Shown: positions 1,250 through 43,750, counted from the stretch's first letter. The stretch is DNA of 51,760 bases from Octopus bimaculoides (GCF_001194135.2 NC_068996.1:38818780-38870539), one strand, 5' to 3'. Notes: a model not told the origin generated them from the sequence alone. A program made the numbers and translations.

Positions 1250-2125
1250 ACATGTAGCGATAAAACTTTTCACACAACCTACCCAATCAAACCAAACTAC
1301 ATCTCTTCCTCTCTTCCTCACATTTCCTTTTTTTCATTCACTATGCTTATACTTATCTCTCACTCCTCAATCCTGTCCTCACTGTATCATTACTATCCTA
1401 TTGCTCCCTCCCTCTATATACCCATGTTTCACCAATCACTGCCCACCCCCAACCTGCTCTTTGTATTTATGTGAAGTCCCTACTCCCAACTCAAGCTCCC
1501 TTTACAATATTCTACCATCCCTTTTATATTCTGACCCCTGTACCATAAGGGTATACCCTTGCACTTTACCACCATCACTCACTCTCACCCTCTCTCACCC
1601 TTCTCTCTCTTGCACTCTCACACTCTTGCTTGCTTCCACTCTCTTTCCCATTTTCGACCACTCTCTCTCTCTCCGCCTCCTGTCTGGAGTAACCATGTAT
1701 CTTCTCTACAGCAAGATACCTATTGCTATCTCTTTGTCATACACTAACCTCTCATCACCTGGCACAAGGTCACCTTATCCAATGCCCCTCCTCTCAAAGG
1801 ATCTTTGTTTTGCAAGTAACTTGGTGACTCTGCTAGTGCTGGTGCCACATAAAATGCATCCAGTCTACACTGTAAAATGGTTGGCGTTTGGAAGGGCATC
1901 TAGCAGTAAAAACCATGCTAAAGCAAATCTTGCCAGAACTGGAACCACATAAAAAGTACTCAGTCCGCTCTGTATGGTAGTTGGTGTTAGGAAGGGCATC
2001 CAGTCATAAAAAACCTTGCCAAAACTGAGAGTGAAGCCTATTGCAGTCTTCTGGCTTGCCAGCTTCTATCAAACTATCCAACCCATGCCAGTATGAAAAT
2101 GCATGATAGATAATGATGATATCAT
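1250..2125 (+). mobile_element. CT-rich repeat joined to an RTE-type 3' tail with (GAT)n end
   Basis: Shares cttctctacagcaagatacct and tggttggcgtt.ggaagggcatc with 7260-8050. Confidence 0.6.
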
Positions 2126-2490: not shown

Positions 2491-4175
2491 CAGGGTGCGA
2501 GGGGTATTTGAAGACAGTTTTGGTATACAATAAAACAACTACATTTCAGCATAAATAAATATTTATTTGAATAAACGTTTGTGCAATTAGTCTTGATAAT
2601 GATTTTTTAAGCAAATTATTCTATGAAACCGCCTTCAGCTTCGATGACTGCTTCAATGCAAGACCAAAACCGCTGAAATGCTGACACTATATGGTCCTTA
2701 TTCATTTTGGACATCACCTGGACAATGGCAGCCTTCAATGAAGCTATGATATTATGAGGATGATGATAAGTCTCCCTTTCAACAGTGTTACACACATAGT
2801 AGTCCTTAGGGTTCAAATCTAATGAGTCTGGAAATCACATACTGGGTGTTACATAATCGTAAAGATTGTCTGACAACCATTCTTGGGTGACTATGGCCTT
2901 GTGAGAAGGTGCTGAGTCTTGTTGAAACACGTATGGCCTTCCATTGCATACTTCATCAATCCAGGGCTTGATAACAGTTTCCAGTACCTCAATGTATCCA
3001 GCAGCATTAATTCTAAGACCTTGTGGAAAAAAGTGGGGAGGCATCGCATGACCTTCGCTACTCACCACTCCTAAAACCATCACAGTCTCTGGAAATTTTG
3101 TGTGCATCACTCTGGGTACTTCAGAAGGATCTGCACATGACCACCTATCATTTCTTCTGTTAGACTTTTGATCCTGGTCAAAGTCTTTTTTCATCAGAGA
3201 AAAACCAAAGCATATCTTGTTCATGAAGATTTTTCACTTCATTAAGTAACCGTTTTGAATGGATGAGATGGTTTTCCTGTGTCTTTGCAGACACGAATTA
3301 GCCTTCGCTCATTACATAGGACTTGTATTGAATGTCACGATGTACCACAGTTCTGACAGTCCACTCTGAAGCCTGAAGTTCTTTAGCAATGGACCTCATT
3401 GATCTTCTGGAGTTTTCATCGATAATGTTTTGAACATGTTGTATAAATTCCGGTGTCCTTTTAGTGTCTGAGCATTGTGAATGTTTTTTCCTCTTTGATG
3501 TAGGTGAAACATTATCATCACATTCCTCCAATTCCAACCAAACTTTGTGTACAAATGATCTTGCAACATTTAGAAAGTTGCTAATTTCTAAATCACTGTG
3601 GTTTGCATGTATACTCTTTCACTCTTTTACTTGTTTCAGTCATTTGACTGTGGCCATGCTGGAGCACCGCCTTTAGTTGAGCAAATTGACCTCAGGACTT
3701 GTTCTTTGTAAGCCTAGTACTTATTCTATCGGTCTCTTTTGCCGAACCGTTAAGTTACGAGGACATAAATACACCACCATCGGTTGTCAAGCAATGTTGG
3801 GGGGAACAAACACAGACACACAAACCTATACGCACACATACATATATATATATACATATATACGATGGGCTTCTTTCAGTTTCTGTCTACCAAATCCACT
3901 CACAAGGCTTTGGTCGGCCCAAGGCTATAGTAGAAGACACTTGCCCAAAGTGCCATGCAGTGGAACTGAACCCGGAACCATGTGGTTCGTAAGCAAGCTA
4001 CTTACCACACAGCCACTCCTATGCCTATTACAGCAACTATGATTGCATGTCTTTTCATTTCTTCAGTTAGCATGATATCTAGAAAGGGTTATATGAAAAA
4101 ACAAATGATACACTAAATAATTTGAAGATGTAATGAACTAAAAACAAAATGTCCCCAAATATCCCTCACACCCTG
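2491..4175 (-). mobile_element. maT-like Tc1/mariner transposon (DD37D), inactivated, with nested SINE
   Basis: TIRs CAGGGTGCGAGGGGTATTTG (2491) and revcomp CAGGGTGTGAGGGATATTTG (4175), TA flanks. Transposase pieces 3298-3537, 2835-3224 (FQQDSAPSH) and 2616-2816 (NPKDYYV); 37 residues between the Ds reading through one TGA. Confidence 0.85.
3612..4028 (-). mobile_element. tRNA-derived SINE family 1 (internal microsatellite), inserted in the maT element
   Basis: Minus-strand head GGAGTGGCTGTGTGGTAAG...GGTTCAGTTCCA; same body at 8240-8795, 23382-23995 and 50151-50690. Confidence 0.85.
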
Positions 4176-8240: not shown

Positions 8241-8611
8241 CATTTTTTCTTTTTTTTTCTTTTACTTGTTTTGGTCATTTGACTGCGGCCATGCTGGAGC
8301 ACTGGCTTTAGTTGAGCAAATCGACCCCAGGACTTATTTTTTCTAAGCATAGTACTTATTCTATCGGTCTCTTTTGCCAAACCGCAAAGTGACGGGGATG
8401 TAAACATACCAGCATCGGTTGTCAAGCAATGTTGTGGGGACAAACACAGGCACACAAACATATACATACATGCATACATACATACATACATGCATACANN
8501 NNNNNNNNNNNNNNNNNNNNNNNNNNNNNNNNNNNNNNNNNNNNNNNNNNNNNNNNNNNNNNNNNNNNNNNNNNNNNNNNNNNNNNNNNNNNNNNNNNNN
8601 NNNNNNNNNNT

Positions 8612-10302: not shown

Positions 10303-10679
10303 GCCAGAGGAACAAGACCTCTTTACTAATGGAGGTAAAAATAGTCAGCTTTGTGGTGAAAAAGACTCCTGAATCAAAATTATTTCAAAGTGTAAGCCCC
10401 TTCTGGTAGAGACAGAGTTACCTCTCTTTGAACATGCATACCTACATACATACATAGAGCCATCCATCCATCCATCCATCCATCCATACATACATACATA
10501 CATGCATGCATGCATGCAGGTATACATTTGTTCAATATCAGAAAGAGTAAATAAAAATGCTGTGATTTTTCCATTTCTTTTTCTGTTGACATATATGCCT
10601 GTATGTTTGTTAGTGACAGAAGGACTGTACACTCACATGCATGCATGTACACACACATGTGCACATACAATGGAATATA

Positions 10680-10781
10680 GACAGACAGACGGATAGGTAG
10701 GTAGGTAGGTAGCTAGTTAGATAGACAGACAGACAGGTAGGTAGGTAGGTTGGTAGGTAGGTAGGTTGGTAGGTTGGTTGG

Positions 10782-10817
<36 letters not shown>

Positions 10818-10909
10818 TAGGCAGAAAGACAGACAGGCAGGTAGGCAGATAGGTAGGTAGGTAGGTAGGTAGGTAGGTAGGTAGGTTGGTAGGTTGGTTG
10901 GTAGATAGA

Positions 10910-10941
<32 letters not shown>

Positions 10942-11015
10942 TAGATAATAGGTAGGCAGGTTGGTAGGTAGTTTGGTAGATAGATAGATAGATGACAGAT
11001 AGATAGATAGATTGA

Positions 11016-11073
<58 letters not shown>

Positions 11074-11090: not shown

Positions 11091-11537
11091 TTTTGTTTGT
11101 TCTCTTCTCCTTTAAAAAACTGTTAAATTAGCTATATCAGTGCTTCATCATTTTTAGTGTTTTATGAAAATGAATGTATTTAACTTGCCAGAAGTAGGTT
11201 GTTTTGATTGGTATTTGTATATTTGATTTGAAATGAAGTATGTTATAGCTTTCCATACAAAATTTTTATCAAAACTGCTTTTATGGGGCTACTGTATAAG
11301 CTCCTATATGCTGTAGTGACCCAGAAGTGTGTGTTTGAGGAAACAAACTGAGGGGCTTCTCTAGGCAGCATACACTTTAGCTACACCATTTGTCTAAATA
11401 CATTAAAAAAAAAAATGGCTGGTTATGACTAGAATGTTTTTGCTTATAAGTCTCCTGGACCAAGTCTAGCCAGCATCTAAATAACAACCATATAGATACA
11501 AAAACTGGTATATTTTAGTAGGACTTACATTTAAAAT

Positions 11538-12037
11538 TTATCCCTGTCTCCCATATTTCCTAATACGAGAATTCCTCCGTTTTAGATATCCATTCCGGTT
11601 CCACCTTCTCATATTTTTTGAATGCATTGAATTTGGAGCTTTCATCATTTTCTTAGGCATTCTTGGTTTTACAACTCTATTATTTTTCTTTCCATTATTA
11701 TTATTTCGCTTTTTCCAGTGACTATTGTATTTTGATCGTCTACGTTTTGGTTCATTTCTTCGGAAAGGTTTTCTTCGATTGTTTCTGCTTTGACGTCGTC
11801 TACCTCTAGCGTAATCAGCATTTGTTCTCTTCACCTTCGCTTCATTTTTATCAGGTTCACTGCTTTCCTTTTCTACGGCAGTTTTCTCTTCAGCCTCATC
11901 AGCAGGAGCACCTTTTTTTGCATCTGGAGATTCAGCCACTTCCTTTTCAGCTTCGTCTTCAACTTCATTTTCAACTTCGTTTTCAACTTCGTTGTCATCT
12001 GAAGCTTCAGCTCGCTGACCACTGGCTAGATGTTGTA
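11538..12037 (-). CDS. Second coding exon: acidic pro-region (NEVE repeats) plus Lys/Arg/Asn-rich C-terminal region ending RKYGRQG*
   Basis: Acceptor tgctatttttcag|TA CAA CAT completes the G left by the exon above (GTA, Val). 500 nt open to TAA (2+166 codons). Extends track ORF 11538..11939 by 32 codons. A GTAAGT donor lies 9 nt after the stop. Confidence 0.8.
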
Positions 12038-12455
12038 CTGAAAAATAGCATGGAAATGGTAAGTAAAAAAAAAAAAAAAAGAAGAAGAAGAAACATGCAA
12101 TTATTTCATGACATCAGCAAAATATAATTTTCTACATTCAGTTTGTCTTGAATAACTTGCTTCTAAAATAGGAACTTGTTCATTGTTGTGAATTTGTTTC
12201 TTATAAACACTACTTTTATACTAAGCAAGATGGAGCTAAGGGATACAACTCAAATAAACTAATGGCATGGATGAAGACAGATCAAATTCATCATGTTTTA
12301 CTGAATGGCATATGAAAAACATTTCTGATGAACTTTAGTTGAGGGGGAGATTAAAGACGTAAAACAAATTACTAAAACAAAACTAGTGGTAATTTTAGCT
12401 CTAACCATCGCACCAAAACAGATCAGCTTTTCCATTTCATCATTAGAAAAATCAG

Positions 12456-12675
12456 CCCTTTAGCATTCTGATTACTCTATCAAATGTATTTCTTATTCAT
12501 TCCTATTGTTTTGAATCAATCATCTATTATCTCATAGCTTTGAGATTTCAATGATATGATGGTCTAGTTTTAGAATGACATTGTAGCATTGGTGTGAGAG
12601 GCTGAATCTGGTCAGTTTCAACATAAAGCAGGTAGAAGATTTTGGCTTGATATGATCAATTTAAATGCTAAAGAG
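12456..12675. mobile_element. piggyBac-like MITE, second copy
   Basis: ccctttagcattctg ... aaatgctaaagag; homologous to 6795-7001. Confidence 0.55.
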
Positions 12676-13529
12676 TTGAAAAAGATTCACCTTAACTTTT
12701 TGAAACTATCTCCCTTCTTTTGTGTGGATCACCAACTGTTACTGCCAGGTTTTTATTTTTGTTTCTCCAACAAAGAGGGACATTTCAGTTCATCAACTCA
12801 TAATGAATTTATTATTTAAGTCATTCAGTACATCAACACCTATTTGATTTATACTTACTAGTTTCATTCCTTGGACAGCAACCCTGCTGTGGTATAGCCT
12901 TTAAGAGCCTCAGTTGATCATATCAACTTTAGTTCCTACCTCAGTCTGGAACCTATTTCATTGATCTCTTTTTGTCAAATCCCTATGCTATGAGAATAAA
13001 GAAATGTAACTCAAATAACAACAACTGTTTTTATACCAGTGTCAATGTAAACAATTTGAGTGTCAATATACATTCACAAATTAGTGACAATCCCTCAAGA
13101 TTGAGACTGATTCATTCCAACTATTATTTTCTTCTGTTATTTATTCCATGGGCTTCAAAGACAACTACAATGTCCATTACATTCTTGGTGACCTAACATC
13201 TATGAAGAGTGTTAGACAATGATGCCATGCTTTTTCAAGTTTCCATTAAATACACTTTTGAACTATTTCTTTTGTCTACCTCATGTGTACTTTACTTCAA
13301 TCAGTTGTGAATGTAACAGTTGTCTGTGCAACAGTTTTTGGACAGCTGCTGGTTCATCTATCACTCACATGACATAGCTGACTCATCAAAACTGAAGTCA
13401 TGTAATGATAGTGAAGAGTACAACTTCTCTCATCAACAATTTTTCTGATATGCCTTTTGATAATGATTTGATCCAATCAATACTTGTTATATTCCCTACA
13501 CAGTTTGTTGGGACATCACCATCACCTTC

Positions 13530-13860
13530 AAGGGTTTAATCAAACAAATTGGTCCCCCAGTACTTATTTTTTAAGTTTGGTACTTATTCTAGCAGTCTCT
13601 CTTGCTGAACTGCTAAGTTATGAGGATTTAAACAAGTCAATGTTAGTTTTCAAGTGAGGGTGTGATGGAGAGGTATAAACAAACACAAAAGTATGCACAC
13701 AGACACTCACACTCACACACATATTGCAGGCTTTCACATAGTTCCCTTCTATAAAATTCAAGGCATAGCAGAAAACACTTGCCCAAGGTGCTGTGCAGTG
13801 GGACTGAACCCAAAACCATGTGGTTACAAAATGAGCTTCTTAATTATTCAGCTTTGTCTC
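13530..13860 (-). mobile_element. Degenerate SINE family 1
   Basis: cacttgcccaaggtgctgtgcagtgggactgaacccaaaaccatgtgg head remnant. Confidence 0.6.
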
Positions 13861-13924
13861 CGCCTATACAAATACCTGTATCATCTTGTACAAAAAGACT
13901 AAAATGTCTTCTTGACTGTTTGGC

Positions 13925-14380
13925 TTAAACATCATCATCATCATCATCATCATTTAGCATCTGTTGTCCATGCTGGCATGGGCTGGACGGTTTGACCAGG
14001 GCTGGCAAACTGGAAAGCTGCACCAGACTCCAGTCTGATTTGGCATGGTTTCTATGGCTGGATGCCCTTCTTAACATTAACCACTCCGAGAGTGTAATGG
14101 GTGGTTTTACGTGCCACCAGGACAGGTGCCATTTACGTGGTATCTGCCACAACTGTGATTTTACTTGGCTTGATGGGTCTGTTTCTCCAGCACAACATAA
14201 TGCCAAAGGTCTTGGTCATTGCCTCCACAAGGCCCAAAAGGTGCTTTTCATGTGCCACCAGCATCAGCCACCTTGCCTCTATGAGGCCCAACATTCAAAA
14301 GACACTCTTTACATGCCACCGGCATAGGTACCAGTTACGTAACACCAGCATCAGTCACAAATACAATGCTACCAAGCTCT
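13925..14380 (-). mobile_element. RTE-type 3' tail, minus orientation
   Basis: (CAT)n followed by the revcomp of the tail consensus. Confidence 0.75.
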
Positions 14381-14836
14381 GAAATTTCATTGGGTCTAGT
14401 TGCTGAGATCAGCTATTTTCAGCTGTTTGGAATGGTTAGTTTTTGTAAGTTTGAACATTTCAAAGTTGATTTACAGCCCTTTCATTATTATAAAAGGGTC
14501 TTTATTCTGATTTTAACAAGAGGCAAATATTAATGTAATGAATACAGGACAAATGAAGTTATAAACTCCCACAAATATATAATGACTGAGAAATATGTGC
14601 TCACACACACATACGCACATCCATTCATTCATTCATAATTCTTTCTACTATCGTCTTGAAATTTTAGTGGGATGGGGCTAGTCAATTACATTGACCCCAG
14701 TGCTCAGTTGGTACTCATTTTATCAACCTCAAAAGGATGAATGGCAAGGTTTGTCCTTTTCAGATTGACACCTATTCATTCATATTAACACTATTAATAT
14801 AATGTCTCTATGGATTTTATGGGTTATGTTTTATAT

Positions 14837-15291
14837 CAGGGGTTCTCAACCATTTTTTATCTATGGACCCCTTTGATTACTATTTTATTCTGGTGGATCC
14901 TCACAGCCATTCAATATTTTAAAACTATTTTAATAGAAATACACTTCTTTTAAAATTCCTATTTTGTTTTTCACACATTAAGTTATCTATGGATTCCTTT
15001 GATTACTATTCTATTATGGTGGACCCCATAGTCATTTGATGTTTAAAAAGTAGTTTTATAGAAACTTCTTTCAAAATTCTTATTTTGTTTTTCACACATT
15101 AACTTGTGTAGATTGAACTAAGTAAAATGTTAGAAAATGAAACTAAGCTGTTTCTTGCAATAAATACCAATACATACATCCAAAGCAAAATTTTTTTAGG
15201 GGCCCTTAAAATACTATTGTGGATCCCCAATATACTATTTTGTTGCATGGACCCCCAAAAATCTTATATGGACCCCAGTTAATGAACAATG
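14837..15291 (-). mobile_element. hAT-like MITE with internal tandem duplication of about 125 bp
   Basis: caggggttctcaacc start; the tatctatgga...cacacattaa unit occurs at about 14858 and 14983. Confidence 0.6.
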
Positions 15292-15689
15292 TTTTATTTA
15301 GATATTTTTGACTTCATTCATGTGCTTTATCTCATGGTATTTTTGCTCATGAGCATTCTTTGTAAATATAAAAAAGCTTTGTATGTAGATATTAATTTTT
15401 TCAGAATTTACTCATTTTACTATTTTTCTTTAACTAATACAAATTATCATACAATATAAAACACATATTTATAATTATTAAAATGATTTTAATGCAGAAT
15501 GAGAATACATTGGTAGGCTCAAGAATGCTTCAGATGTTCTACCACTGGATGTACCTGATTTTCGTCAGACATCTTTATTTCCAGTTTATAGAAATGCCAC
15601 CTATAATGATACTTTGACATTTTCTCTCCAAAAGGGTTTTGCAAGCCAATATTCACATGCTAGTATTCGTAGCTTAATGTGCTTTGAGA

Positions 15690-16165
15690 TCCACTGCTGA
15701 TCTCTAATTGTAGAGGGAACATGTGGAAGGAGTAGACCCAGGAAAACATGGGCTGAAATGGTGAGAAAGGATATACAGATGTTGGGACTTACAGAGGGGA
15801 CGACAAGGTACTGAGACACCTGGTGGTTTGCTGTACTTAAGGAAACACGACAAGCCAAGTAAAAGCATGGTTGTTCTTGCATACAAGTCTGTCTCCTGCA
15901 TCTCTTTCCGGTTGAGCATTCTTAATCTTGTGGGCTCGGGGGTGCTGGTGCCACATAAAAAGCACTTGTACTGGCGCTATGTAAATAAACCAGTGCCAGT
16001 ACTGTGTAAAAGCACCCAGTACACTCTGTAAAGTGGTTGGTGTTAGGAAGGGCATCCAGTCACAGAAACCATGCCAAAACAGAAATGGAGCCTGGGCATC
16101 TCCTGTAAAACCATCCAACTCATGCCAGCATGGAAAATGGACATTAAATGGTGATGACAATGATA
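15690..16165 (+). mobile_element. RTE LINE 3' end with tail
   Basis: gagggaacatgtggaaggagtagacccaggaa identical to about 37890; tail follows. Confidence 0.75.
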
Positions 16166-16320
16166 TATATAAATATATATGTAATTGTTTAATAGTTCAC
16201 AAATCTGAAAAAAATCACTGTCTAAAAATTAGAGCAGTAACACTTAAAAGATTGTTGGTTATGGCTGGCCAGAGAGTGACCATTGGATTTTAGTCGTACA
16301 AATGACTTGTTAGACTTGAA

Positions 16321-16748
16321 GGCTGGCCTGAGTTCCTGGTCATTATCTGACTGCTAATATAAGAATATTGTTCTACTAATGTTGAGAGGTAGCCACACCC
16401 ATGCATCAACAAAAATACTTGACAATATGTTTAGGTTTTAGAACCATCTAGGAGAACAGGTAAAATACAACTGTCTTATATACCATAAGTTTGGTTGTTT
16501 ATTTCACATCACCATCATATATTTATCTTTTCAGATGATTAAAGATTATACTGATATACTTTAACCACTGTGTGATCTTATTTATCAATATCCACATTCT
16601 ACGATAAATGACAACCCAATTATTGGGGATGCTCCACATTTTTCACTATCTGTTCATATATCTGAGTGGCTGGACTAAGTTCCTGATCATTATCTGACTA
16701 TTGTTCTACTAATGTTGTGAGGTAGCCACACCCATGCATCAACAAAAA
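16321..16748. repeat. Direct repeat pair of 80-95 bp (16321-16416, 16668-16748)
   Basis: attgttctactaatgttg.gaggtagccacacccatgcatcaacaaaaat present twice. Confidence 0.8.
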
Positions 16749-17059
16749 TGTCAGTAATTGGTTGTAGTTCTTTTGCTAAAGTCTCACTAACTCTGGCATT
16801 ATCTGTGTATTAAAATCCAAATAATAATGTAGACATGATCTTTGTTCTGGCTTAGAGTCTGACAAAGTTGAGTGGTTTGCCATCTATCTGTACAATATGA
16901 AATCTGGACATCAGGAAAAAGTTTACACTCAAACTTGGTCTCAAGTTTATGCATAACTATGAGGAAAATAGAAAAGAGAGAAGTGACTATGACACACCTC
17001 TGCTTAACTTCAGTTCTCACTTCAAACTGATTTGTTGTGAAGGACTTATTCTTAAGCTT

Positions 17060-17460
17060 TTAACTTTCCATGGAGCATAGGCTATTGATATCTTTCTTTC
17101 ACTGTTCTTGACTCAGAGCTATCTTTTCAGTTCCTTTCCAGTTGGATCCCTGCTTTTTCAGTCTCTCTTCCATCTCCCTTCTGGGTTCTATCCCTTCTTG
17201 TGCATCAAACATATATTTCCTAAAGGCCTTCCTCTTCCAGGTCTTGATTTTAAATTGTCATTGATGCTTTGTAACTTTGCTTTTTTATCCAAGTAGGAGT
17301 GTTGGCTCTACAAAAATCCATTTTTACTTCTGGGAAGAGGTTGTCTGTATTAGTCTGGTCTCTATTCTTTGGCCTGTCGAGCACTAGAAGCTCAGTCAGG
17401 GATGTGTGCTCTGCTGGTGCAGCTCTCAAGGTCATTAAAGTACAAAAGCTACCATACTAC
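17060..17460 (-). mobile_element. RTE-like LINE C-terminal remnant
   Basis: Decayed *NPEGRWKR and ETEKAGIQLERTEKIALSQEQ*KKDINSLCS resemble the RTE ORF end. Confidence 0.4.
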
Positions 17461-17974
17461 AGCAAAGACTCACTATACTTATTTCGTGTTATTATGTAGA
17501 AGTTGGGTAATTATAATGACTTTTCTTTTTGTGGATGGTATTTTTCACAGAATTTCTCAATTTATTGATTCAAAAGCACACACACACACACACACACACA
17601 CACCTGTCCATGCCTTTATCTAAGTATAATATGTCATGCTTCATGAAATAATTTAGCTTGTCAGCTACTACATTTAGAACTTGTATAGTGTAGAGTAGCA
17701 GATAATCTCCTAGTTCATCTTGATTAATTTCCATATGTTACACAGGATTTCTGATGTAGCACATGTTAGACATGATTCCTTAGAGCTTCATAAAAGTGAA
17801 TATTTTCTTCTTATGCTATAAAAGAAATACTATGTAGTAAATGGAAATTAATCAATAGTTACTGACATGGTTATGACTTGATGCAAGATTGGTTACTGTG
17901 ACTAATGATGAAACAATTGTAAACAATGAATGAAAATGATTTTCTAACTACTCTCTTTGGTATATGTTATTTAA

Positions 17975-18009
<35 letters not shown>

Positions 18010-18143
18010 AAAAACCATTAGAAAATTTCTTGCTCTTAATCTTTGAAAATCCCTTTTCTTTCTTAGTTCAAGGATTTGTGAATTATAGGTGATCCAGTGA
18101 GCAGTGAAAAGAAAAAAATTGAAGTGAATAAAAAGGGTATTAC

Positions 18144-18189
18144 CTGAAAAAATAAAACATAGCACCAGCAATATATATATTGCTCTCAT
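18144..18189 (-). CDS. First coding exon (signal peptide MRAIYILLVLCFIFS+G) of a predicted secreted 181-aa precursor
   Basis: Minus strand reads ATG AGA GCA ATA TAT ATA TTG CTG GTG CTA TGT TTT ATT TTT TCA G|GTAATA: 46 nt, phase-1 GT donor. An upstream acceptor ttttactttaatcgtatattttccag|G at 18241 implies a further 5' UTR exon. Hydrophobic core follows MR. Confidence 0.75.
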
Positions 18190-18625
18190 CTTCTCTTTTC
18201 TTATTTTCTTTCCTCAGCAATCACAATAAAATATGTTTAACCTGGAAAATATACGATTAAAGTAAAAACTTATCAGTAGACAGATAAATAATTTCATGGC
18301 ATACATTGATCTTGTGATTGAAGTTTTTAACCATTTGACAAACAGGGATCAAATAAATGAGGACCATACTCAAATAATACTGGAATAGATATAATATGGA
18401 AAGCAGAGCTTCAACATAACTCCAGCATTAGTGATTGTCCAATAGCTGAGCCTTGTAAAGTAATAAATGAGTATGGAAAATACTTGTTCATTAAAAGAAA
18501 AGCACTAGGAAAGCAGATCATAAAGTTAGATAGCTACAAGAATCAAAATGAGTCTCTTATGAAAAGAAATTGAACAGGAAATTAGACACTAGAGCAACAG
18601 TTTCTAGTAAGCAAGACCTTAAAAT

Positions 18626-19108
18626 CAGTTGTTCTCAATGGCGATCCATACGACCCCTGGGGGTTCATATAAGATTTTGTTGCTAAAATTTATATGCAAT
18701 AACAAAGGCAATGAGCTGATGAACTGTTTGCATGTCAGGTAAAATGCTTAGCAGAATTTCGTTCATCTTTATGTCCTGAGTTTAAATTCCACTGAGGTCG
18801 ACTTTTGCCTTTCATCCTTTCAGGGTCAATAAAATAAGTACCAGTTGATTACTGTGGTTGATTTAATCGACTCACCCCTCCCCCAAAATTGCTGGTCTTG
18901 TGCCAAATTTTGAAACCAAAATTCATCTAAAATAATTTGCTTAAACTTTTACAATACACAAAATATTTCAGTTTTTTTTATACAATTCCTAATAATATTT
19001 AATTATAAAAATTCAGTAAGATTTTTTGAAAATACATAGAAAAGCTATGGGTGTCCAGTAGAGTAAAATAGGAATCAAAGGGGTCCATAGGTAAAGAATA
19101 GTTGAGAG
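18626..19108 (+). mobile_element. hAT-like MITE with nested SINE family 2 (about 18705-18920)
   Basis: cagttgttctcaa start, gggtccatagg...gttgagag end; SINE core gtcgacttttgcctttcatcctttcagggtcaataaaataagtaccagtt inside. Confidence 0.55.
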
Positions 19109-19109
19109 A

Positions 19110-19480
19110 GAGAGAAGGATAGAGACAGTTAGATAGAGAGAACTGTCTTATTATAGAGGAGATACCTGGCTACTGCAGAAGAACAAGGGAGCGGTGGGAG
19201 GTAGAAGAGAGAGAGAGAGAGAAGGAGAGAGACAGAGGGAGAGAGAAGGATAGAGACAGAGGGAGAGAGAACTGTCTTATTACAGAGGAGATACTTGGCT
19301 ATTGCAGAAGGATGAGGAAGCAGAGGGAGGTGGTAGAGAGAGGGAGAGAGAAGGATAGAGACAGTCAGAGGGAGAGAGAACTGTCTTACTACAGAGGAGA
19401 TACTTGGTTACCTCAGTAGGACAAGGAAGTGGAGGAGGGTGAGAGAGAGCAAGATAGAAACAGTCGGAATGAAAGAGAGA
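19110..19480 (-). repeat. Three tandem 110-130 bp GA-rich units
   Basis: gagagaactgtctta.ta.agaggagatac.tgg at about 19138, 19266 and 19376; revcomp matches the CT-rich family at about 1680. Confidence 0.7.
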
Positions 19481-20462: not shown

Positions 20463-21692
20463 TCAGGTCATCCCATAAGTTCTGTCCGAATTTTGAATAA
20501 AGAAAACAAATGATCAAATGTTATATTTAATTGAAATTTAATCATCAATATACTTTCCCTGATTATCTATGACTTCCTTCCATCTATTTACAAGCTTTTT
20601 AATCCCATCAATGTAAAACTCTTTTGGTTTCAAAGCGAAGAACTCTGAAATGTCAGTTTCGACCTCCTCCTGGCTTACGAAAGTTATGACCCCCAAATGA
20701 TTCTATAAACTACAAAACAAATGGTAGTCTGAAGGAACAAGGTCAGGAGAATAAGGTGGATGAGGAATTTTTTTCCCAACCAAGCTCTTCAATCTTCTGT
20801 GATGTGATCTTGGCAGTGTGGGGTCACGCATTGTCCTGATGAAACGTCACTCCTTTTTGATTCACTAAAGCAGGTCTTTTTTTCTTCAAAGCTTGGTTCA
20901 AATGCTCTAATTACTGACAGTAGACTCGAGCATTGATTGTTGCATTAGGTGGTAACAATTCAAAGTAAATTACTCCTTTGCAATCCCACCAGATAGAGAG
21001 AAGAACCTTTTTCCCCATGAAGTTCCCATTTCGGTTGTGTTCGAGCTTTTTCCCTTTACCCAAGCCATTGTTTACGACGTTTAACATTTCAATAGAAGAT
21101 CCATTTTTCATCACCAGTCACAAGTCTATCCAAAAAGGGTGAAATGAGTTCGTGAGAATGGAGAGAATAGCAGATGTAAACTCGGGATTTGCGGTTGCTT
21201 TCAGACAATTCATGAGACACCCATTTTCTAAGTTTAGGAACCTTTCTTCAACTGATAATGCAGGATTTTCTTCAAGTAATGCCTCAAGGAGCTTATCATC
21301 AAACTCAACTCGATGTGCTGTTTGATCTTTATCTTCAAGGCTGAAATCTCCACTTTTGAATTTTGCAAGCCATCTTCTGCAAGTTCTTTCCTTCAAGCAT
21401 TCTTTCCCATAAACTGAGTGTATGTTTCGAGTTGCTTTGGCTGTAGAATTTCCTTTTTTTGTACTCATAAAGCATTATGTGCCTTAAATGCACTTTGGAT
21501 ACTTCCATATTAGAATGGGTTTTAATCAAAGAAATTTTAATTCTATTATTCTGTAAAATAATATTTCATTAGTTTAAATGTACACAAATGCATTAAAATA
21601 ATTTTTAATTCCATTAGACATTCTAAAATACTATTAAATTTCATTCAATTTAAAAAAAAGTAAAATCGGACAGAACTTATGGGATGACCTGA
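20463..21692 (-). mobile_element. Near full-length mariner (DD34D), inactivated
   Basis: Perfect TIRs TCAGGTCATCCCATAAGTTCTGTCCG with TA flanks; transposase motifs TGDEKW, SIWWDCKGVIYFELL, HQDNA*PH, PHPPYSPDLVPSDYHLF with stops and frameshifts. Confidence 0.9.
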
Positions 21693-27074: not shown

Positions 27075-28775
27075 GGAGAGAGTTAGCTTAGATGAGATGC
27101 AGTTTGGTTTTGTACTAGGGAGAAGCACCACTGATGCTATATTTCTGGCGAGGCAGCTGCAGGAGAAATACATAACCAAAGATAAACCTCTGTACTTGGC
27201 CTTTGTTGACATGGAGAAAGCCTTTGACAGGATCCCCTGGCCCCTTATCTGGTCAATGCAGAAACTAGGAATAGACAAGTGGTTTGTGAGAGCTATACAA
27301 GCTATGTACTGGGATGCAACCAGTAAGGTAAGGGTTGGCAATGAGTACAGCAAAGAATTCATGGTACAAGTAGGGGTTCACCAAGGATCGGTGCTCAGCC
27401 CACTTTTGTTCATCATAGTCCTCCAGTCAATAACAGAGGAATTCAAGACAGGCTGCCCCTGTGAACTCCTCTATGCTGATGACCTCGCTCTTAGGCTGAA
27501 TCACTACCTGAACTAGAAGTATGGAAGCAAGGTCAAGAATCGAAGGATCTTAGAGTTAACCTAGCAAAAACCAAGGTATTAGTAAGTAGGAAGGCAGACG
27601 AATTTCAAATCCCATCAGGTAGATGGCCCTGCTCAATCTGTAGAAAAGGCATAGGTAGAAACTCCATAAGATGCACCCAGTGTAAGTTTTGGACACATAA
27701 AAGGTGCAGCAATATCAGAGGAAAGTTAACAAGGAAACTAGCTTTTGTATGTGGAAGATGCACAGGTACAATAAACGCTGAAAATGGGCAGAAAATAGAC
27801 TCCATCAACTGTCAGGGGTAAAGCTAGAGGTAGTAGATAGCTTCCGTTATCTAGGTGACCAAGTTAGTAGTGAAGGTAGGTGCTCCAAGAGCATAACTTT
27901 GAGAATAAGATTAGGATGGGCAAAGTTCAGAGAACTCCTACCCCTGCTGGCAACAAAGGGTCTCTCTCTCAAGTGACAGGCAGATTGTTTGATGCCTGTG
28001 TGTGAACAACTATGTTGCGTGGTAGTGAAATGTGGGCTGTAACAGCTGAGGACATGTAGGCTTGAAAGAAATAAAGCCAGTATGCATGTTTAACAGAGTG
28101 TAAGCATCTTAAGAGAAAAGTTAGGCATAAGAGGAATCAGATGTGGTGTGCAAGAGAGACAACTGCACTGGTATGGTCATGTGATGCATATGGACAAAGA
28201 CAACTGTGTAAAGAAGTGCTGATCTTTAACTGTGGAGGGAACCTGTGGTAGAGGTAGACCCAGGAAGACATGGGATGAGGTGGTGAAGCATGATCTTCAA
28301 ACTTTGAGCCTCACAGAGGCAATGACTGGCGACCGAGACTTTTGGTAATGTGCTGTGCTTGAAAGGACCTGTCAAGCCAAGGGAACCTGTGCTGGTGACA
28401 TGTAAAGAACACCTTTTGAGCAGTGGGCCTCATGGAGGCAAAGTGGCTGAGCTCCTTTCAAGAGTTGGGCCTTATGGAGGCAATGACTAAGACCTTTGGC
28501 ATTATGTCATGCTTGAGAAGAAGACCCATCAAGCTGAGCAAAGTCACAGTTGTGGCAGATACCAGTGCCACGCAAATGACACCTGTGCCGGCGGCATGTA
28601 AAAGCACCCATTACACTCTCAGAGTGGTTGGCATTAGGAAAGGCATCCAGCTGTTGAAAACCATGCCAAATCAGACTGGAGTCTGGTGCAGCCTTCCAGC
28701 ATGCCAGCTTGGTCAAACCGTTCAACCCATGCCAGCATGGACAACAGACGTTAAATGATGATGATGATGATGAAT
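27075..28775 (+). mobile_element. RTE LINE, 5'-truncated, RT to (GAT)n tail
   Basis: ORF 27097..27516 QFGF..GRSTTDAIF..LAFVDMEKAFDRIP..GVHQGSVLSPLLF..LLYADDL. Confidence 0.9.
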
Positions 28776-29329
28776 TGGTGCCGAAAAAAAGATTCATGAA
28801 ATGTAAAAAGGAAATTGTGCTAGAATTCATGGAGGTAAGTTCAAAGACAGAGATGGCAGTATTCCATTCTAGCTGGAGATTGGTCTCCATTCATGGAGGC
28901 AAAAGGTCTAAGTACATGAAACAGAAGAATGCTGTAATTGGTCAATGGTGCTCATTTTTGAGTTAAGAAATTCATACATGGAAAAGAAGGCTTTCACATG
29001 ATGTTCTTTTGTATCTCATTAATGAAAGATATTTTCAGAGTTGAGGTACAGGATTTATCAGGATTGTTGATTGCAGCACTTGGTTTGTTTCTCTCACTTA
29101 GCTGTGTTGAGTTTCCATATTTTTTTGTTTTCAATATCAAGATTCATCATATGTTGTGTGATTTAGGTCGTACATTCTGTTGAACTTAAGCAACAGTTGT
29201 ATTTCTCAGTAAGTTGTTTATTGTTTTCTTCTAGTGGAAGAAGAGGGGGTTATTAAGTGTATTTCATAGCAGGGTGTATATGTGTTCTATGTCAGTGTTA
29301 TTGTTCTTTTATTTAGAGAGGAAGAAAAG

Positions 29330-30444: not shown

Positions 30445-30559
30445 AAAGCAACAACCAAGATGAGGACACCAGTTCAACTAATATGAAGAGTAGGCATAAT
30501 ATAAATTCTTCCTCTCAGAAATACATTGATAGAATTGTATGACTCGTAAATTTATAGAA

Positions 30560-31900
30560 AACCTCAGCAATTCTTTTTCAACTTTGGATGTCGGTATTTT
30601 CTTTGTTGTTATTCTGTTCCAGATCGTTCTGGCCACTGCACCATGCCTCATGGGAAGATAATATTTAGGAAACATTCTCTCACAGCTGGCAATAATGTGG
30701 TTGATGTCTTCACTCTTGGACTTCCACAGCATACATTTGTTGTTTTTCAATGTTTTCTGCCTCTTAAGTGATAGGTACTTGGTGAGGAGGTCTTGTTCTT
30801 GAATAGCATGGAGGTAGCCTTTGAAGTGAGGTGTCATAAACATGTCAGTACTCCATACCAAGCTCTTGACTTGATCGGTACCTTCTATGATTTATTTCTT
30901 TGTGCCAAGTACCCATGAAATAACTTCCCAGTGAACAAATCCATTTTCTTTTTATTTTGCTGTTCTGATAAATAGAATATACCAATGCTGCTTGAGGAGA
31001 GCCCAATATCAGCTCCTATTTCATCCCTCTCCTCAAGTTCACTAGCTATCCTAATGATGCTGTTTTTGTGCTTACAAACTGGGTAAGATAGTTATTGGTC
31101 GCCTTTCTTCTGCTGCAGATGTTGTTTTAGTGTCACAATATGTGCTGCTTCATATGACATCAATACAGATTTGAGACCACGACTACCATCCTTGTGTGAG
31201 AAATATAACCTGTCTTCATCTCCATTGGTGCTGAAGTTTCTTGTATCACTGAGCAACTTGTGAGTTTGGACATCTGTCTCTTTGAGTTGCTGTAGTGACC
31301 GATTCAGAAGGCCAAATGTAGATGTATGTATGTATGTATGTATGTATGTATGTATGTATGTGTGTATGTATGTATGTATGTGTGTGTGTATGTGTGTGTA
31401 TTCACATACATAAATATACACATACATATATGCATACACACATGCACACACACATACATACATACACACATAAATACTTACATATACACATACATACATA
31501 TGGAAGGAATTTGTGAGTGACATACAGTCCCTAACTCATCAAAGAGGGCAGTTACTCTGAATAAGAATCAATTTTTGCCAGTGACAAGATCCAAAGACTT
31601 TGCAGATTCAAAGACTAAAATTACACAAACTTGTAGAATCTTTTGGGAAAGGAGTCAACAGAAAGTGCCAGCTTTCTATTCAAAGAGTCTCCTGTTTATA
31701 TTGCACTGGCTTTTTGTGGTATTGTATACTTCTTGACAAGAAGATTGCATAAATAATAAAACTACTTAACTCTCACAAGCTTAATCCATCTTTACAATGC
31801 ACTCTAAGAAATACTGCTAATAGAAGATGGACCAACATATAAAAGATGAAAAATTTAGCTAATCCTCAGTGATTATGGATGTAGTAAAATGTAGTGAAAA
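30560..31900 (-). mobile_element. R4/Dong-like (RLE-type) non-LTR retrotransposon remnant, interrupted by (TGTA)n
   Basis: DRLYFSHKDGSRGLKSV; GYLHAIQEQDLLTKY..KCMLWK..EDINHIIASC..MRHGAVARTIW (decayed CCHC and RHD motifs). Confidence 0.6.
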
Positions 31901-33138: not shown

Positions 33139-33545
33139 NNNNNNNNNNNNNNNNNNNNNNNNNNNNNNNNNNNNNNNNNNNNNNNNNNNNNNNNNNNNNN
33201 NNNNNNNNNNNNNNNNNNNNNNNNNNNNNNNNNNNNNNNNNNNNNNNNNNNNNNNNNNNNNNNNNNNNNNNNNNNNNNNNNNNNNNNNNNNNNNNNNNNN
33301 NNNNNNNNNNNNNNNNNNNNNNNNNNNNNNNNNNNNNNNNNNNNNNNNNNNNNNNNNNNNNNNNNNNNNNNNNNNNNNNNNNNNNNNNNNNNNNNNNNNN
33401 NNNNNNNNNNNNNNNNNNNNNNNNNNNNNNNNNNNNNNNNNNNNNNNNNNNNNNNNNNNNNNNNNNNNNNNNNNNNNNNNNNNNNNNNNNNNNNNNNNNN
33501 NNNNNNNNNNNNNNNNNNNNNNNNNNNNNNNNNNNNNNNNNNNNN
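33139..33545. other. Assembly gap
   Basis: N run. Confidence 1.
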
Positions 33546-34918: not shown

Positions 34919-35597
34919 NNNNNNNNNNNNNNNNNNNNNNNNNNNNNNNNNNNNNNNNNNNNNNNNNNNNNNNNNNNNNNNNNNNNNNNNNNNNNNNNNN
35001 NNNNNNNNNNNNNNNNNNNNNNNNNNNNNNNNNNNNNNNNNNNNNNNNNNNNNNNNNNNNNNNNNNNNNNNNNNNNNNNNNNNNNNNNNNNNNNNNNNNN
35101 NNNNNNNNNNNNNNNNNNNNNNNNNNNNNNNNNNNNNNNNNNNNNNNNNNNNNNNNNNNNNNNNNNNNNNNNNNNNNNNNNNNNNNNNNNNNNNNNNNNN
35201 NNNNNNNNNNNNNNNNNNNNNNNNNNNNNNNNNNNNNNNNNNNNNNNNNNNNNNNNNNNNNNNNNNNNNNNNNNNNNNNNNNNNNNNNNNNNNNNNNNNN
35301 NNNNNNNNNNNNNNNNNNNNNNNNNNNNNNNNNNNNNNNNNNNNNNNNNNNNNNNNNNNNNNNNNNNNNNNNNNNNNNNNNNNNNNNNNNNNNNNNNNNN
35401 NNNNNNNNNNNNNNNNNNNNNNNNNNNNNNNNNNNNNNNNNNNNNNNNNNNNNNNNNNNNNNNNNNNNNNNNNNNNNNNNNNNNNNNNNNNNNNNNNNNN
35501 NNNNNNNNNNNNNNNNNNNNNNNNNNNNNNNNNNNNNNNNNNNNNNNNNNNNNNNNNNNNNNNNNNNNNNNNNNNNNNNNNNNNNNNNNNNNNNNNN
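34919..35597. other. Assembly gap
   Basis: N run. Confidence 1.
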
Positions 35598-36639: not shown

Positions 36640-38320
36640 AGAAATAATTACAGAAGCAGCAAATTGCTAGACCAGGTGATGAAAGTTGCAGAAAGGGTTA
36701 TAGCTCAATTAACTAGGGAGAAAGTTAGCGTAGATGAGATGCAGTTTGGATTTCTGCCAAGGAGAAACACAACCAATGCTATCTTCCTGGTTAGGCAACT
36801 GCAGGAGAAATACTTGGCCAAGATGAAACCCCTGTTTCTGACTTTTGCTGATATGCAGAAAGCCTTTGACAGGATCCCCCAATCTCTTACCTGGTGTGCA
36901 ATGTGGAAGCCAGAGACAGATGAGTGGTTAGTGAGAGCTGAGCAATCCATGTGCAGGGAAGCCATTAGTAAGGTGAGAGTCGCCAATGAGTATAGCAAGG
37001 AGTTTAATGTACAAGTAGGAGTCCACCAGGGGTTGGTTCTTAGCCCCCTCTTATTTATCATGGTCTTCCAGTCTATAACTGCAGAATTGAAGACTGGCTG
37101 CCCCTGAGAGCTCCTCTATGCTGATAACCTTGTTCTTATTGCTGAATCACTAACAGAACTAGAGAAAAACTTCAGGTATGGAAGCAAGGTCTGGAATTAA
37201 AGGGACTTAGAGTTAATTTAGCAAAGACCAAAGTATTGATAAGTAGGAAAACAGACAAACTGCAGGTGCCTTCAGGGAGAAGACTCTGCTCAGTATGTAG
37301 AAAAGATGTCAGAGAAACTCCATAAAGTGTACACAATGCAATCTATGGACACATAAGAGGTGATGTGGTATCACTGGATGACTAATGGAGAAAGCAGTCT
37401 TTACATGTGGTAGATGTGCAGGTACATTAAACACCAGGAATGTACAAAAAAATAGACTCCCTTGTATGCCAAGGGTAGTAGACAGTTTCCATTACTTAGG
37501 TGACCAAGTTAGTAGTGGGGGTGGGTGATTGTTCTGAAAGGATAGCTGCTAGAATAAAGATAGGCGGAACAAAGTTCAGAGAGCTACTACCTCTATTAGT
37601 AATGAAGGGCTTCTTCCTCAGAGTGAAAGGCAGATTGTACGATGCCTATGTACATGTCAGAGAGACATGGGCTGTGACTACTGAAGATGTGTGAAGACAT
37701 GAAAGAAATGAAGCCAGTATGCTTTGCTGGATGGGTAATGTCAGTGTGCATATATGACAGAGTGTAAGTGATTATGGGAGAAAAACTGGGTATATGTAGC
37801 ATCAGATGTAGTGTGCAAAAGAGAAGACTGAGCTGGTAAGGCCATGTAATGTGTTTGAATGAGGACAGTTGCATCAAAAGGTTGCCAATCTCTAATTATA
37901 GAGGGAACATGTGGAAGGAGTAGACCCAGGAAGACGGGGGATGATGTGGTGAGACAGAATCTTCAGATACTAGGAGTCACAGAGGGGATGACAGAGGACT
38001 GAGGCTCCTGGCAATTTGCTGTGCTTGAAAAGACATGTCAAGCTAAGTAAAAGTGTGGTTGTCCACTGCAACCCTCTCTAACTGACCATCCCTAACTTTG
38101 AAGGCTTGTAGGTGCTGGTGCTACAAAAAAAAAACACCTATACTAGTGCTGTGTAAAAGTACCCAGTACACTCTGTAGAGTGATTGGCATTAGGAAGGGC
38201 ATCCAGCTAAAGAAACCATGCCAAAACAGACATGGAGCCCAAACAGCCCTTCAGCTGGTCAGCTTCTGTCAAACTGTCCAACTCATGCTAGCATGGAAAG
38301 CAGACATTGGTTAGTTGTTC
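36640..38320 (+). mobile_element. RTE LINE, 5'-truncated, decayed
   Basis: ORF 36664..37107 QFGFLPRRNTTNAIF..KAFDRIP..GVHQGLVLSPLLF; tail at 38150-38310. Confidence 0.9.
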
Positions 38321-38436: not shown

Positions 38437-38489
38437 AGCTAAATGCTTGTAACCTCTTTACTAATGGAGGGAAGAATACAATCTCGGCC

Positions 38490-38930
38490 GGGAGTGTGTG
38501 TGTGTCTGTGTGTGTGTTACACGGCGGCCTAGGCGGACGAGAAAGAAGAAGCAGGCCGAGCGAGTCGTGGCGGCAGCAGCAGCAGCGAGAAGGAAGCGAT
38601 TGGGAGCGAGCAAAGAGAATGCGGACGCCTCGGCGGCGGACTGCCGCCGCCGAACTGCCGGCGCGATGGAAAGGCCGACGTGTCGGCTGCGATACGAGCC
38701 ACGCGGCTGGTACCGTACCCGTGACAGGGTCCGATTCGCGAGTTTGCGGGTCGGGCCCGGGGGAATAGTCACGCTCTAGGTGACCCTCATACCCCAAGGG
38801 GGTCCAGACTACTATGTAGGGTAGTCGTCGATCGGACGGTCGTTCCCTATGACTCGCACCCCGAACCGCAGCCGATTGGAAGGCAGACGGTTGTGAAAGA
38901 AACCCTGAAATGAAATTCTCGAACATGAAA
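38490..38930. promoter_or_regulatory. Isolated CpG-rich, GC-rich island
   Basis: Dense CG dinucleotides and GGC/GCA runs in an otherwise AT-rich, CpG-poor window; function not shown. Confidence 0.35.
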
Positions 38931-40946: not shown

Positions 40947-41174
40947 CTGTAAGAAACTATTCTACTTTCTATGTTCTATGTTATATATTTTGATAATTAC
41001 TGATATTTTTATATATGTAAAGCATAATATGTTATACATGTATTTATATTTTTATAATTGTTTTTTTAAAAAGTAAATAAATAGACATAATATAATGTCT
41101 AAAAGTTGATGAATACCACCTCTTGATCCCCTCCATTTTCATATTGCTATATATTTATGTATAATGTGCAGAAA

Positions 41175-41450
41175 ACAACCTTTGCCACACTCCAGGGAGA
41201 AAAACTAGAAGTAGTTGATAGCTTCCGTTATCTAGGTGACCATGTTAGTAGCCGAGGAGGGTGCACTGAAAGTGTAGCTGCTAGAATAATAATAGCTTGG
41301 GCAAAGTTCAGAGACCTCTTACCTCTCCTGGTGACAAAGGGCCTCTCGCTCAGAGTAAAAGGCAGACTGTATGACGCATGTGTACGAACAGCCATGCTAC
41401 ATGGCAGTGAAACATGGGCTGTAATTGTTGAGGACATGCGTTGTTATGTC
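41175..41450 (+). mobile_element. RTE LINE ORF fragment
   Basis: KLEVVDSFRYLGD..AWAKFRDLLPLL..YDACVRTAMLHGSETW. Confidence 0.85.
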
Positions 41451-41795
41451 CCGTTGTTATGTCATGTTATTTGTATTTGTGTAACATTCTCCTTTTTTTT
41501 CCATCCTTGTTTTCATATACATTCGCTGCTTTCTTCCAAGGAATCTAATGCTCTTAGCTTAGTTTTTCCTTGGGGTTGACCAGATAGGAGCAATCTTGAG
41601 TATAACCAGCCGAAATTGCAAAGATAATCTGGAACTCAACTGAGGAAAGAAAACTCCGAATGATCCGTCCTTCTTTTCTTTGTATCGTCTATCTGGATGT
41701 TTTGTTGTCCCTTTTTTGTATCACCTAATTGTCTGGATGTTTTGCATTCTTGCCCCATTTTGTATTTTTTATATATAATATATACATACATACAT

Positions 41796-43165: not shown

Positions 43166-43750
43166 TTGGGTATGATCACTAGTGATGGTGACGTTATGCC
43201 TCCATTTATCTTCCTGCATGGCCTCAGACTCAATACAGAGGCCTACATCAAGTGCCTGAAGGAGGTAATGCTGCCCTGAGTCAAAAGGGTGGCTGCTGGA
43301 AGACCCTATGTCTGGCAACACGACTCTGCCCTAGGCCACACAAGCAGGAGAACCCAGTCATGGCTGTCATACAATTTCTGCAGCTACATCACCCCAAACA
43401 TCAGGCCACCTAACTCCCCAGACTGCACCCCCCCACTTGATTATTACATGTGGGGCACAGGTGAGCGAGAGACCAACAAAACTCCTTGTAACACCAAAAA
43501 TGAACTGAAGGCAAGGATTATGATAGCATTCACCATCTTAAACAAGGAGGCTGTCCAGAAGAGCTGCAGGAGACTCTGAAGTCATCTGGAGGCTGTGGTT
43601 GAAGCTGATGGCGATTTTATTGAATTAATTTACTCTTTGGTATTTCAAGATATTTTTATGTAAATTTGGTAAATATATCTATTAAAATGAGATGTTAATA
43701 TTATTTTCATTTTTGCATAATTTAGACGACAATTTATTCACTGCACCCTG
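43165..43750 (+). mobile_element. 3' half of a maT-like (DD37D-type) transposon
   Basis: GRPYVWQHDSA..RPPNSPDC.PPLDYYMWG; ends caccctg|TA like the 2491-4175 TIR. Confidence 0.75.

Follow-up and report, generated by a model that had tools for sequence, protein, structure and literature searches.

A putative two-exon gene for a small secreted prepropeptide with segregated charge blocks in Octopus bimaculoides

The question raised by the locus described here is whether two segments on the minus strand of a stretch of Octopus bimaculoides DNA constitute a gene and, if they do, what kind of protein this gene encodes. The stretch, called the window below, was analysed at its full length of 51,760 nucleotides (nt; GCF_001194135.2 NC_068996.1:38818780-38870539), and all positions are counted from its first letter. 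A preliminary description of the locus had proposed a secreted precursor of an unrecognised family, in which a signal peptide and an acidic pro-piece are followed by a Lys-Arg (KR) convertase site and a long cationic region with a terminal Gly. What can be taken as established is the open reading frame (ORF) with its splice junction, the existence of an orthologue that covers residues 1-93, and the presence of coding-type signals in the basic block; the gene is probably real. The reading preferred in the present study, held tentatively and with a confidence that stays a little short of even, is that of a two-exon gene of the Octopus lineage for a small prepropeptide that would be secreted and mostly disordered, with its charge segregated into blocks. 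As judged from the sequence, the polybasic half is a probable part of the product.

Gene Structure and Reading Frame

The minus-strand join of 18189-18144 with 12037-11538 (46 + 500 nt, phase 1) encodes a protein of 181 amino acid residues (aa) followed by TAA, and the phase-1 GT...AG junction of the preliminary description was reproduced letter for letter when the segments were rejoined. The coding part of exon 1 (18144..18189) consists of an ATG, 15 codons and 1 nt (MRAIYILLVLCFIFS) and encodes the predicted n- and h-regions of the signal peptide. On the minus strand these positions read ATGAGAGCAATATATATATTGCTGGTGCTATGTTTTATTTTTTCAG and continue into GTAATA, forming the donor CAG/GTAATA (here and below, a slash within a sequence marks an exon or cleavage boundary). 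The intron (12038..18143) is a phase-1 GT...AG intron of 6,106 nt, and exon 2, from 12037 on, follows a pyrimidine tract of over 20 nt and the acceptor TTTTCAG/. Exon 2 starts with the end of the signal peptide, VQHLASG (12018..12037), with a cleavage site predicted at ASG/Q by manual application of the -3/-1 rule. It continues with the acidic block (11832..12017, residues 23-84), Lys85-Arg86 (11826..11831), which had been proposed as the convertase site, the polybasic block (11541..11825, residues 87-181) and the TAA stop codon (11538..11540).

The frame of exon 2 does not look like a product of chance. Of 20,000 dinucleotide-preserving shuffles, 0 left the whole frame open, and only 17 of 20,000 kept that of the basic part open; the two remaining frames of this part contain 5 and 13 stops. 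Exon 2 is T-poor (17.6% T), and this composition lowers the frequency of stop codons. The first in-frame ATG, GTG or TTG of exon 2 is codon 49 (GTG), with no in-frame ATG ahead of the basic region, so the exon needs a start exon upstream. The 12 kb upstream offer 178 candidates for a phase-1 first exon running from an ATG to a GT. Exon 1 is the most hydrophobic of them, its signal peptide reaching the highest 10-residue Kyte-Doolittle mean (3.31), and it is among only four candidates that pair a hydrophobic core with an AG/GTR donor. Each exon occurs once in the window and neither derives from repeats or transposons, and no paralogue or tandem family of the gene was found in the window. Neither the KR site nor the terminal Gly is individually significant at this composition.

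Upstream of the ATG there is an in-frame TGA at a distance of 24 nt, and the 108 nt that precede the ATG contain no other. A TATA-like sequence, TATATTTT (18246..18253, minus strand), lies 64 nt upstream of the ATG and is a weak match to the consensus in AT-rich DNA. The sequence TTTTCCAG/ at about 18241 on the same strand matches the acceptor consensus, and, given this site, there may be an extra exon of the 5′ untranslated region (UTR) upstream of exon 1.

Several other candidates were rejected. A signal-peptide look-alike at 1711-1770(+) has no ATG and follows a stop, and it was attributed to chance. The basic block is not a frame-shifted copy of the acidic block, as there is no DNA similarity between the two, and a structured RNA was dismissed because no Rfam match was found in the window. 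An antisense ORF of 101 aa at 11822-12127(+), opposite the acidic block, is of the kind that GAA-rich coding sequence is expected to produce and is no argument for a gene there.

Homology Search and the Octopus vulgaris Relative

The predicted protein was compared with 5.8 billion proteins in a word-indexed search, with 1.84 billion cluster representatives in an exhaustive phmmer search and, as a two-sequence profile, with 5.8 billion proteins; these searches covered annotated or predicted proteins, as distinct from raw cephalopod genomes and transcriptomes. The sole match in all three was CAI9734433.1 (A0AA36BHF0), a 'Hypothetical predicted protein' of 114 aa from Octopus vulgaris. The Pfam search at E<=10 returned sub-threshold noise only, with no family reaching the cut-off, the PDB sequences contained no match to the 181-aa protein, and a literature search with strings from the protein found no paper. 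The claim of an unrecognised family has held, since Pfam, the PDB sequences and two very large protein libraries give only this unnamed O. vulgaris model. On these comparisons, the gene appears to be a taxonomically restricted orphan of the Octopus lineage, and its predicted product is best filed as a taxonomically restricted secreted prepropeptide, i.e., an orphan small secreted protein outside any named family.

The O. vulgaris model begins with MRAIYILLALCFILS/VQHLASG and has the ATG, exon 1 and the exon-exon junction in common with the window gene. Over residues 1-93 the identity is 82%, with one whole-codon deletion and no frameshift; in the exon-1 part, 13 of 15 residues are identical, and the acidic block is conserved. 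CAI9734433.1 gives independent support to the gene, its splice junction and its acidic block. The split between O. bimaculoides and O. vulgaris is about 34 million years old (PMC10700109), and the retention of the start, junction and frame across this time favours constraint on residues 1-93. A nuclear or nucleolar acidic/basic protein with a false exon 1 was also considered and rejected, because the O. vulgaris model shares exon 1 and because exon 2 has no in-frame start before the basic region.

A number of observations weigh against the preferred reading, and most of them concern the basic half. CAI9734433.1 is without the polybasic block: only TNADYAR (87-93) of that block is shared, and beyond it the model continues into an unrelated 22-aa tail (DQAEFSSIVKFAFLCSRIIDKE, then a stop). 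The basic half, as far as the alignment indicates, is without comparative support from the only known relative. The boundary between the pro-piece and the basic region is KVKR in the window and KVKK in O. vulgaris, dibasic in both species but with the P1 Arg lost. No protein of this sequence is annotated for other cephalopods in the libraries, apparently including the species' own genome, and none is marked as a product of the window; this argues against strong expression in commonly sampled tissues. On the coding strand, neither AATAAA nor ATTAAA occurs within 2.8 kb past the stop. The acidic block offsets less than half of the basic charge (-16 vs +35), and whatever function is ascribed to the protein comes solely from analogy. 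Two elements of the preliminary description are weakened accordingly: the KR convertase site is KK in the O. vulgaris model, and the 95-aa cationic region is missing from the only orthologue model, which leaves the alignment at ADYAR/.

It could be, on this evidence, that what the gene makes is a short acidic secreted protein like that of the O. vulgaris model (signal, acidic block and short tail), the transcript leaving exon 2 by a splice at or near 11803, and that the polybasic ORF is intronic, belongs to the 3′UTR or represents a minor isoform. This possibility is taken seriously, although it is considered unlikely. The O. vulgaris similarity stops exactly at a phase-1 GT (GAG/GTAGAC, 11798..11806 on the minus strand, with the intron starting at 11803; ARG here, ARD there), and the next D is compatible with G/AY. 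No annotated isoform in the libraries searched includes the tail, and the O. vulgaris annotation drew not only on the ab initio predictors Augustus and GeneMark but also on Iso-Seq/RNA-seq PASA assemblies, combined via EVidenceModeler (PMC10700109). The tail of CAI9734433.1 could be a real splice or an ab initio choice. Against the short product, the GT at 11803 fits only 5 of the 9 donor consensus positions in this window. Besides, the 22-aa tail has no credible tblastn counterpart in any frame of the window's tail or of the 11.5 kb downstream, and it reads like translated non-coding sequence. Moreover, the basic block has an open frame, CpGs in Arg codons and T at third positions, whereas the neighbouring intron does not.

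Coding Signals of the Basic Half

The ratio of observed to expected CpG (CpG o/e) reaches 1.3 over the 289 nt of the basic part and 0.66 over the acidic part, compared with 0.25 in the window, and the 500-bp bins flanking the basic part show values of 0-0.24. Only 0.6% of 289-nt segments reach a CpG o/e of 1.3, and the others with at least 1.0 are clustered in a few spots, one of them a CpG island near 38.5 kb. Ten of the 11 CpGs in the basic block are the first two bases of CGN Arg codons, and the Arg codons of the block comprise ten AGA, five CGA, three CGT, three AGG and two CGG. In a CpG-depleted genome, the placement of CpGs in Arg codons is the pattern expected from selection for arginine, unlike that of a former intron or UTR. 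The frequency of T at the third codon position is 0.34 and 0.33 in the two blocks vs about 0.1 at positions 1-2, and the value of the basic block was matched by 35 of 20,000 stop-free random codon sets. The codon preference is pronounced as well, with 14 AAT vs 2 AAC for Asn and 11 AAA vs 3 AAG for Lys. Taken as signals in the DNA, these properties make translation of the tail, in one isoform at least, reasonably likely.

Downstream of the stop codon, a donor-like GTAAGT (AAT/GTAAGT, 11523..11528, minus strand) fits 8 of 9 consensus positions and starts 9 nt after the stop. Together with the lack of a polyadenylation (polyA) signal, it suggests a further 3′UTR exon. Such an exon is plausible from the local sequence, and it might be the one read as the 22-aa tail in the O. 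vulgaris model. Some 470 nt beyond the stop there begins a stretch of about 400 nt (10677-11071) composed of a (TAGG/ATAG)n microsatellite with (AT)n and (CT)n, and no canonical polyA signal is located between the stop and this stretch. An assembly gap at 8499-8610, downstream of the gene, could hide a small exon.

Predicted Protein and Its Possible Mode of Action

The predicted signal peptide of 22 aa has the n-region MRA, the h-region IYILLVLCFIFSV and the c-region QHLASG, with a net charge of +1. The signal-peptide-like start of the preliminary description is borne out, as the n-, h- and c-regions are present and the residues preceding Gln23, A at -3 and G at -1, fit the classical rule for cleavage before this residue. 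After the predicted cleavage, the proprotein comprises 159 aa, with an isoelectric point (pI) of 10.5 and a net charge of +21. The charge counts given earlier were obtained again: 24 D/E and 8 K/R in the 62-aa pro-piece and, in the 95 aa after KR, 37 K/R, 2 D/E and no Cys; the C-terminal residue is Gly, as claimed. The acidic block has a net charge of -16 and a pI of 4.1. It includes a 12-nt coding minisatellite, GAAGTTGAAAAC, with five copies at 11938-11997 (83% matches) that encode (NEVE)n, which suggests that the acidic block grew by repeat expansion.

The basic block (95 aa) has a net charge of +35, a pI of 12 and a grand average of hydropathy (GRAVY) of -2.34. Arg accounts for 23, Lys for 14 and Asn for 16 of its 95 residues, while only 13% of residues are hydrophobic (VILMFWC), and there is no N-glycosylation sequon. 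At ten places in it, two or more basic residues adjoin, and there is one RX[KR]R motif, RGRR (93-96), which sits past the part conserved in O. vulgaris. The best 18-residue helical hydrophobic moment is 0.48, at a mean hydrophobicity of -0.53. AlphaFold, run on the single sequence, predicted a signal helix at 2-22 with a predicted local distance difference test score (pLDDT) of about 85, a disordered acidic block and isolated helices at 79-103, 118-134 and 156-177. No globular fold was predicted (mean pLDDT 63; predicted template modelling score, pTM, 0.21).

From these features we infer secretion, processing, charge masking and a polyanion-binding or host-defence role. The 22-aa signal peptide would take the protein into the endoplasmic reticulum, and the remaining 159 aa would behave as a block polyampholyte, in which the acidic block (-16) precedes a hydrophilic Arg/Lys/Asn block (+35). 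During transport, the acidic block would probably pair electrostatically with the polycation and keep it soluble and harmless. Convertases of the furin/proprotein convertase (PC) type would then cut at KR and RGRR at the boundary and probably also within several of the ten multibasic clusters further in, and short, strongly cationic, non-amphipathic peptides would be released. The released peptides could bind polyanions, be it microbial surfaces, mucins, sulphated glycans or nucleic acids. The density of basic sites makes it unlikely that the intact 95-aa polycation would survive a regulated secretory granule, and an amphipathic antimicrobial peptide that lyses membranes is disfavoured by the low hydrophobicity; an electrostatic antimicrobial action of the protamine type, or the condensation of polyanions, is possible. 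The layout of an antimicrobial or toxin precursor, to which the locus had been likened, is preserved in the order of its modules (+1, -16, KR, +35) but not in the polycation, which is neither amphipathic nor disulphide-stabilised. The antimicrobial, venom, egg-case and matrix labels are speculative.

The same architecture could be read as that of a neuropeptide or peptide-hormone precursor, with the acidic block as a spacer and the basic region fully processed into several short peptides. The amides predicted in that case are NNNN-NH2 (from NNNNGKK), ...RIRKY-NH2 (from YGR) and ...GRQ-NH2 (from the terminal Gly). Besides the signal peptide and the acidic spacer, this reading can point to 12 di- or multibasic sites within the proprotein and to three Gly residues in positions suited to amidation. 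Neuropeptide and hormone precursors often come from two-exon genes in which the signal has an exon to itself, and the window gene fits this layout. Nevertheless, this reading is improbable. The basic block has no repeated or conserved peptide motif and no internal peptide repeats, and no similarity to any molluscan neuropeptide family emerged from the library and Pfam searches. The dense basic sites would yield mostly N/S/P products of 2-8 residues with little receptor-binding character, and the putative peptide region is missing from the O. vulgaris model. The neuropeptide NKY, suggested by ...RIRKYG, was rejected, because its diagnostic core motifs, FW[RQ]P[LM]G[YG] and G[YF]WIWMPAQG with a terminal K...Y, are absent from the 181 aa (PMC6425005).

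It is about equally improbable that the locus is a non-functional or barely functional young ORF, that is, purine-rich, minisatellite-containing sequence open by chance and caught by predictors. Such an origin would agree with an orphan that has a single, predicted-only relative, with the low complexity and the 12-nt tandem repeat within the coding sequence, with a T-poor composition that lowers stop frequency and with the lack of a nearby polyA signal; were the two species closely related, an identity of 82% could be near-neutral. However, shuffles that keep the composition almost never leave the frame open, and in the second species the ATG, the signal peptide, both splice sites (donor and acceptor) and the frame have been retained, the only indel being of a whole codon. 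The retention of CpG is confined to the exon and occurs within Arg codons, which likewise speaks against chance.

The least probable of the alternatives, a structural or adhesive polyelectrolyte that self-coacervates or condenses with polyanions in egg cement, spermatophore, sucker or skin mucus, would suit the charge segregation, the disorder and the Asn/Arg/Lys/Tyr/Met-rich composition without Cys or sequons, but its resemblance to coacervating adhesives is one of layout only, no homology backs an adhesive role, the dense convertase sites argue against an intact secreted polymer, and the gene is small and single copy, with no expanded family in the window.

Comparison with Known Systems

The preferred reading, a secreted prepropeptide with segregated charge, can be compared with several described classes of proteins, and no homology to dermaseptins, defensins, cathelicidins, big defensins or other described host-defence families was found in Pfam, the PDB or the protein libraries. 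In the frog-skin genes of the preprodermaseptin type, exon 1 encodes the signal peptide and exon 2 everything that follows, and this gene plan matches that of the window gene. The order of the modules is the same, too, and a C-terminal Gly is present here as well. However, there is no sequence similarity, and the cationic part is 95 aa long here vs 10-35 aa there. It is 13% hydrophobic, of low moment and not an amphipathic helix former, it has many internal dibasic sites, and the KR preceding it is unconserved (KK in O. vulgaris).

In alpha-defensins and in the pro-form of the eosinophil major basic protein (pro-MBP), an anionic pro-piece masks the cationic domain in trafficking. The predicted product likewise has an anionic pro-piece ahead of a strongly cationic domain. 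The cationic domains of alpha-defensins and pro-MBP are folded and disulphide-bonded, whereas that of the window gene has no Cys and no predicted fold (pTM 0.21); the charge of -16 offsets less than half of +35, and there is no homology.

The precursors of molluscan neuropeptides (NKY and the FMRFamide type) share with the predicted product a signal peptide, an acidic spacer, dibasic sites and Gly followed by basic residues, but their repeated peptide units and the NKY motifs are absent here. Cephalopod protamines, which are made with a removable N-terminal leader, and sperm nuclear basic proteins have extreme positive charge, low complexity and disorder in common with the basic block. Unlike them, the predicted product has a hydrophobic signal peptide that would direct it to the secretory pathway; Arg makes up only 24% of the block, Lys and Asn are abundant, and the searches found no similarity. 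The 'basic tail' proteins of tick saliva are secreted, and their polybasic tail is thought to target anionic surfaces; they combine a folded Cys-rich body with a short Lys tail, while the window gene encodes no folded body and is not homologous to them. Molluscan neuropeptide families are broadly conserved (PMC6425005), in contrast to the window gene, the homologue of which was found only in Octopus.

A more far-reaching version of the secreted-polycation reading, regarded as a long shot, is that of an Octopus-born gene, possibly arisen from a purine-rich minisatellite, for a new class of secreted extracellular polycations, protamine-like and not amphipathic, with their own polyanionic chaperone block. 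By the same slim chance, polyanions such as nucleic acids, sulphated mucins or polyphosphate would be condensed or coacervated in an octopus-specific secretion, for which the spermatophore, egg cement and sucker or skin mucus are equally conjectural candidates. An alternative splice at 11803 could then switch between an acidic-only and an acidic-plus-basic product.

If the prepropeptide gene is confirmed, an unannotated lineage-restricted secreted protein will join the octopus gene set, and at least one public octopus annotation will prove to truncate the gene or to use a different isoform. Charge-block secreted peptides are candidates for host defence or the secretion matrix, and very few of them have been characterised in cephalopods. 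A hydrophilic polycation of 95 aa that comes with its own anionic partner would also be of use as a naturally occurring case of polyelectrolyte self-masking. As the evidence stands, however, the locus adds to the list of orphan small secreted ORFs and touches no long-standing question.

Genomic Surroundings

The window is rich in transposable elements and poor in CpG, with a GC content of 36.5%. Assembly gaps at 8499-8610, 33139-33545 and 34919-35597 are runs of N (1,198 in total) flanked by microsatellites. A purine-rich tandem repeat at 19104-19449, about 900 nt upstream of exon 1, has a unit of 109-129 nt in about 2 copies, with an AG-rich inner period of 10-24 nt. The ORF translations at 13925-14382, 15837-16160, 28423-28890 and about 1800-1950 share the motifs ...ASSHRNHAK... 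and ...CHLRGICHNCDF..., which points to one interspersed repeat in several copies, two of them within the 6.1-kb intron.

Fragments of the long interspersed nuclear element (LINE) type are located at 27097-27516(+), 36664-37107(+), 30478-30861(-), 41157-41579(+) and 45280-45561(+); two of their ORFs match RVT_1 (E 8e-19 and 6e-15) and one weakly matches zf-RVT. The LINE reverse transcriptase ORF has thousands of public relatives with identities of up to 74%, one of which is labelled E. coli, presumably owing to contamination. Remnants of the Mariner/Mos1 type were found at 21118-21468(-), 2835-3224(-) and 43289-43579(+); one matches HTH_48 (E 2e-12), and two are DDE-like ORF fragments recognised by eye only. 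A GC-rich block resembling a CpG island at 38480-38900, with a CpG o/e of at least 1 and many CGG/GCC runs, could belong to a neighbouring gene as its promoter or first exon, or could be a GC-rich repeat.

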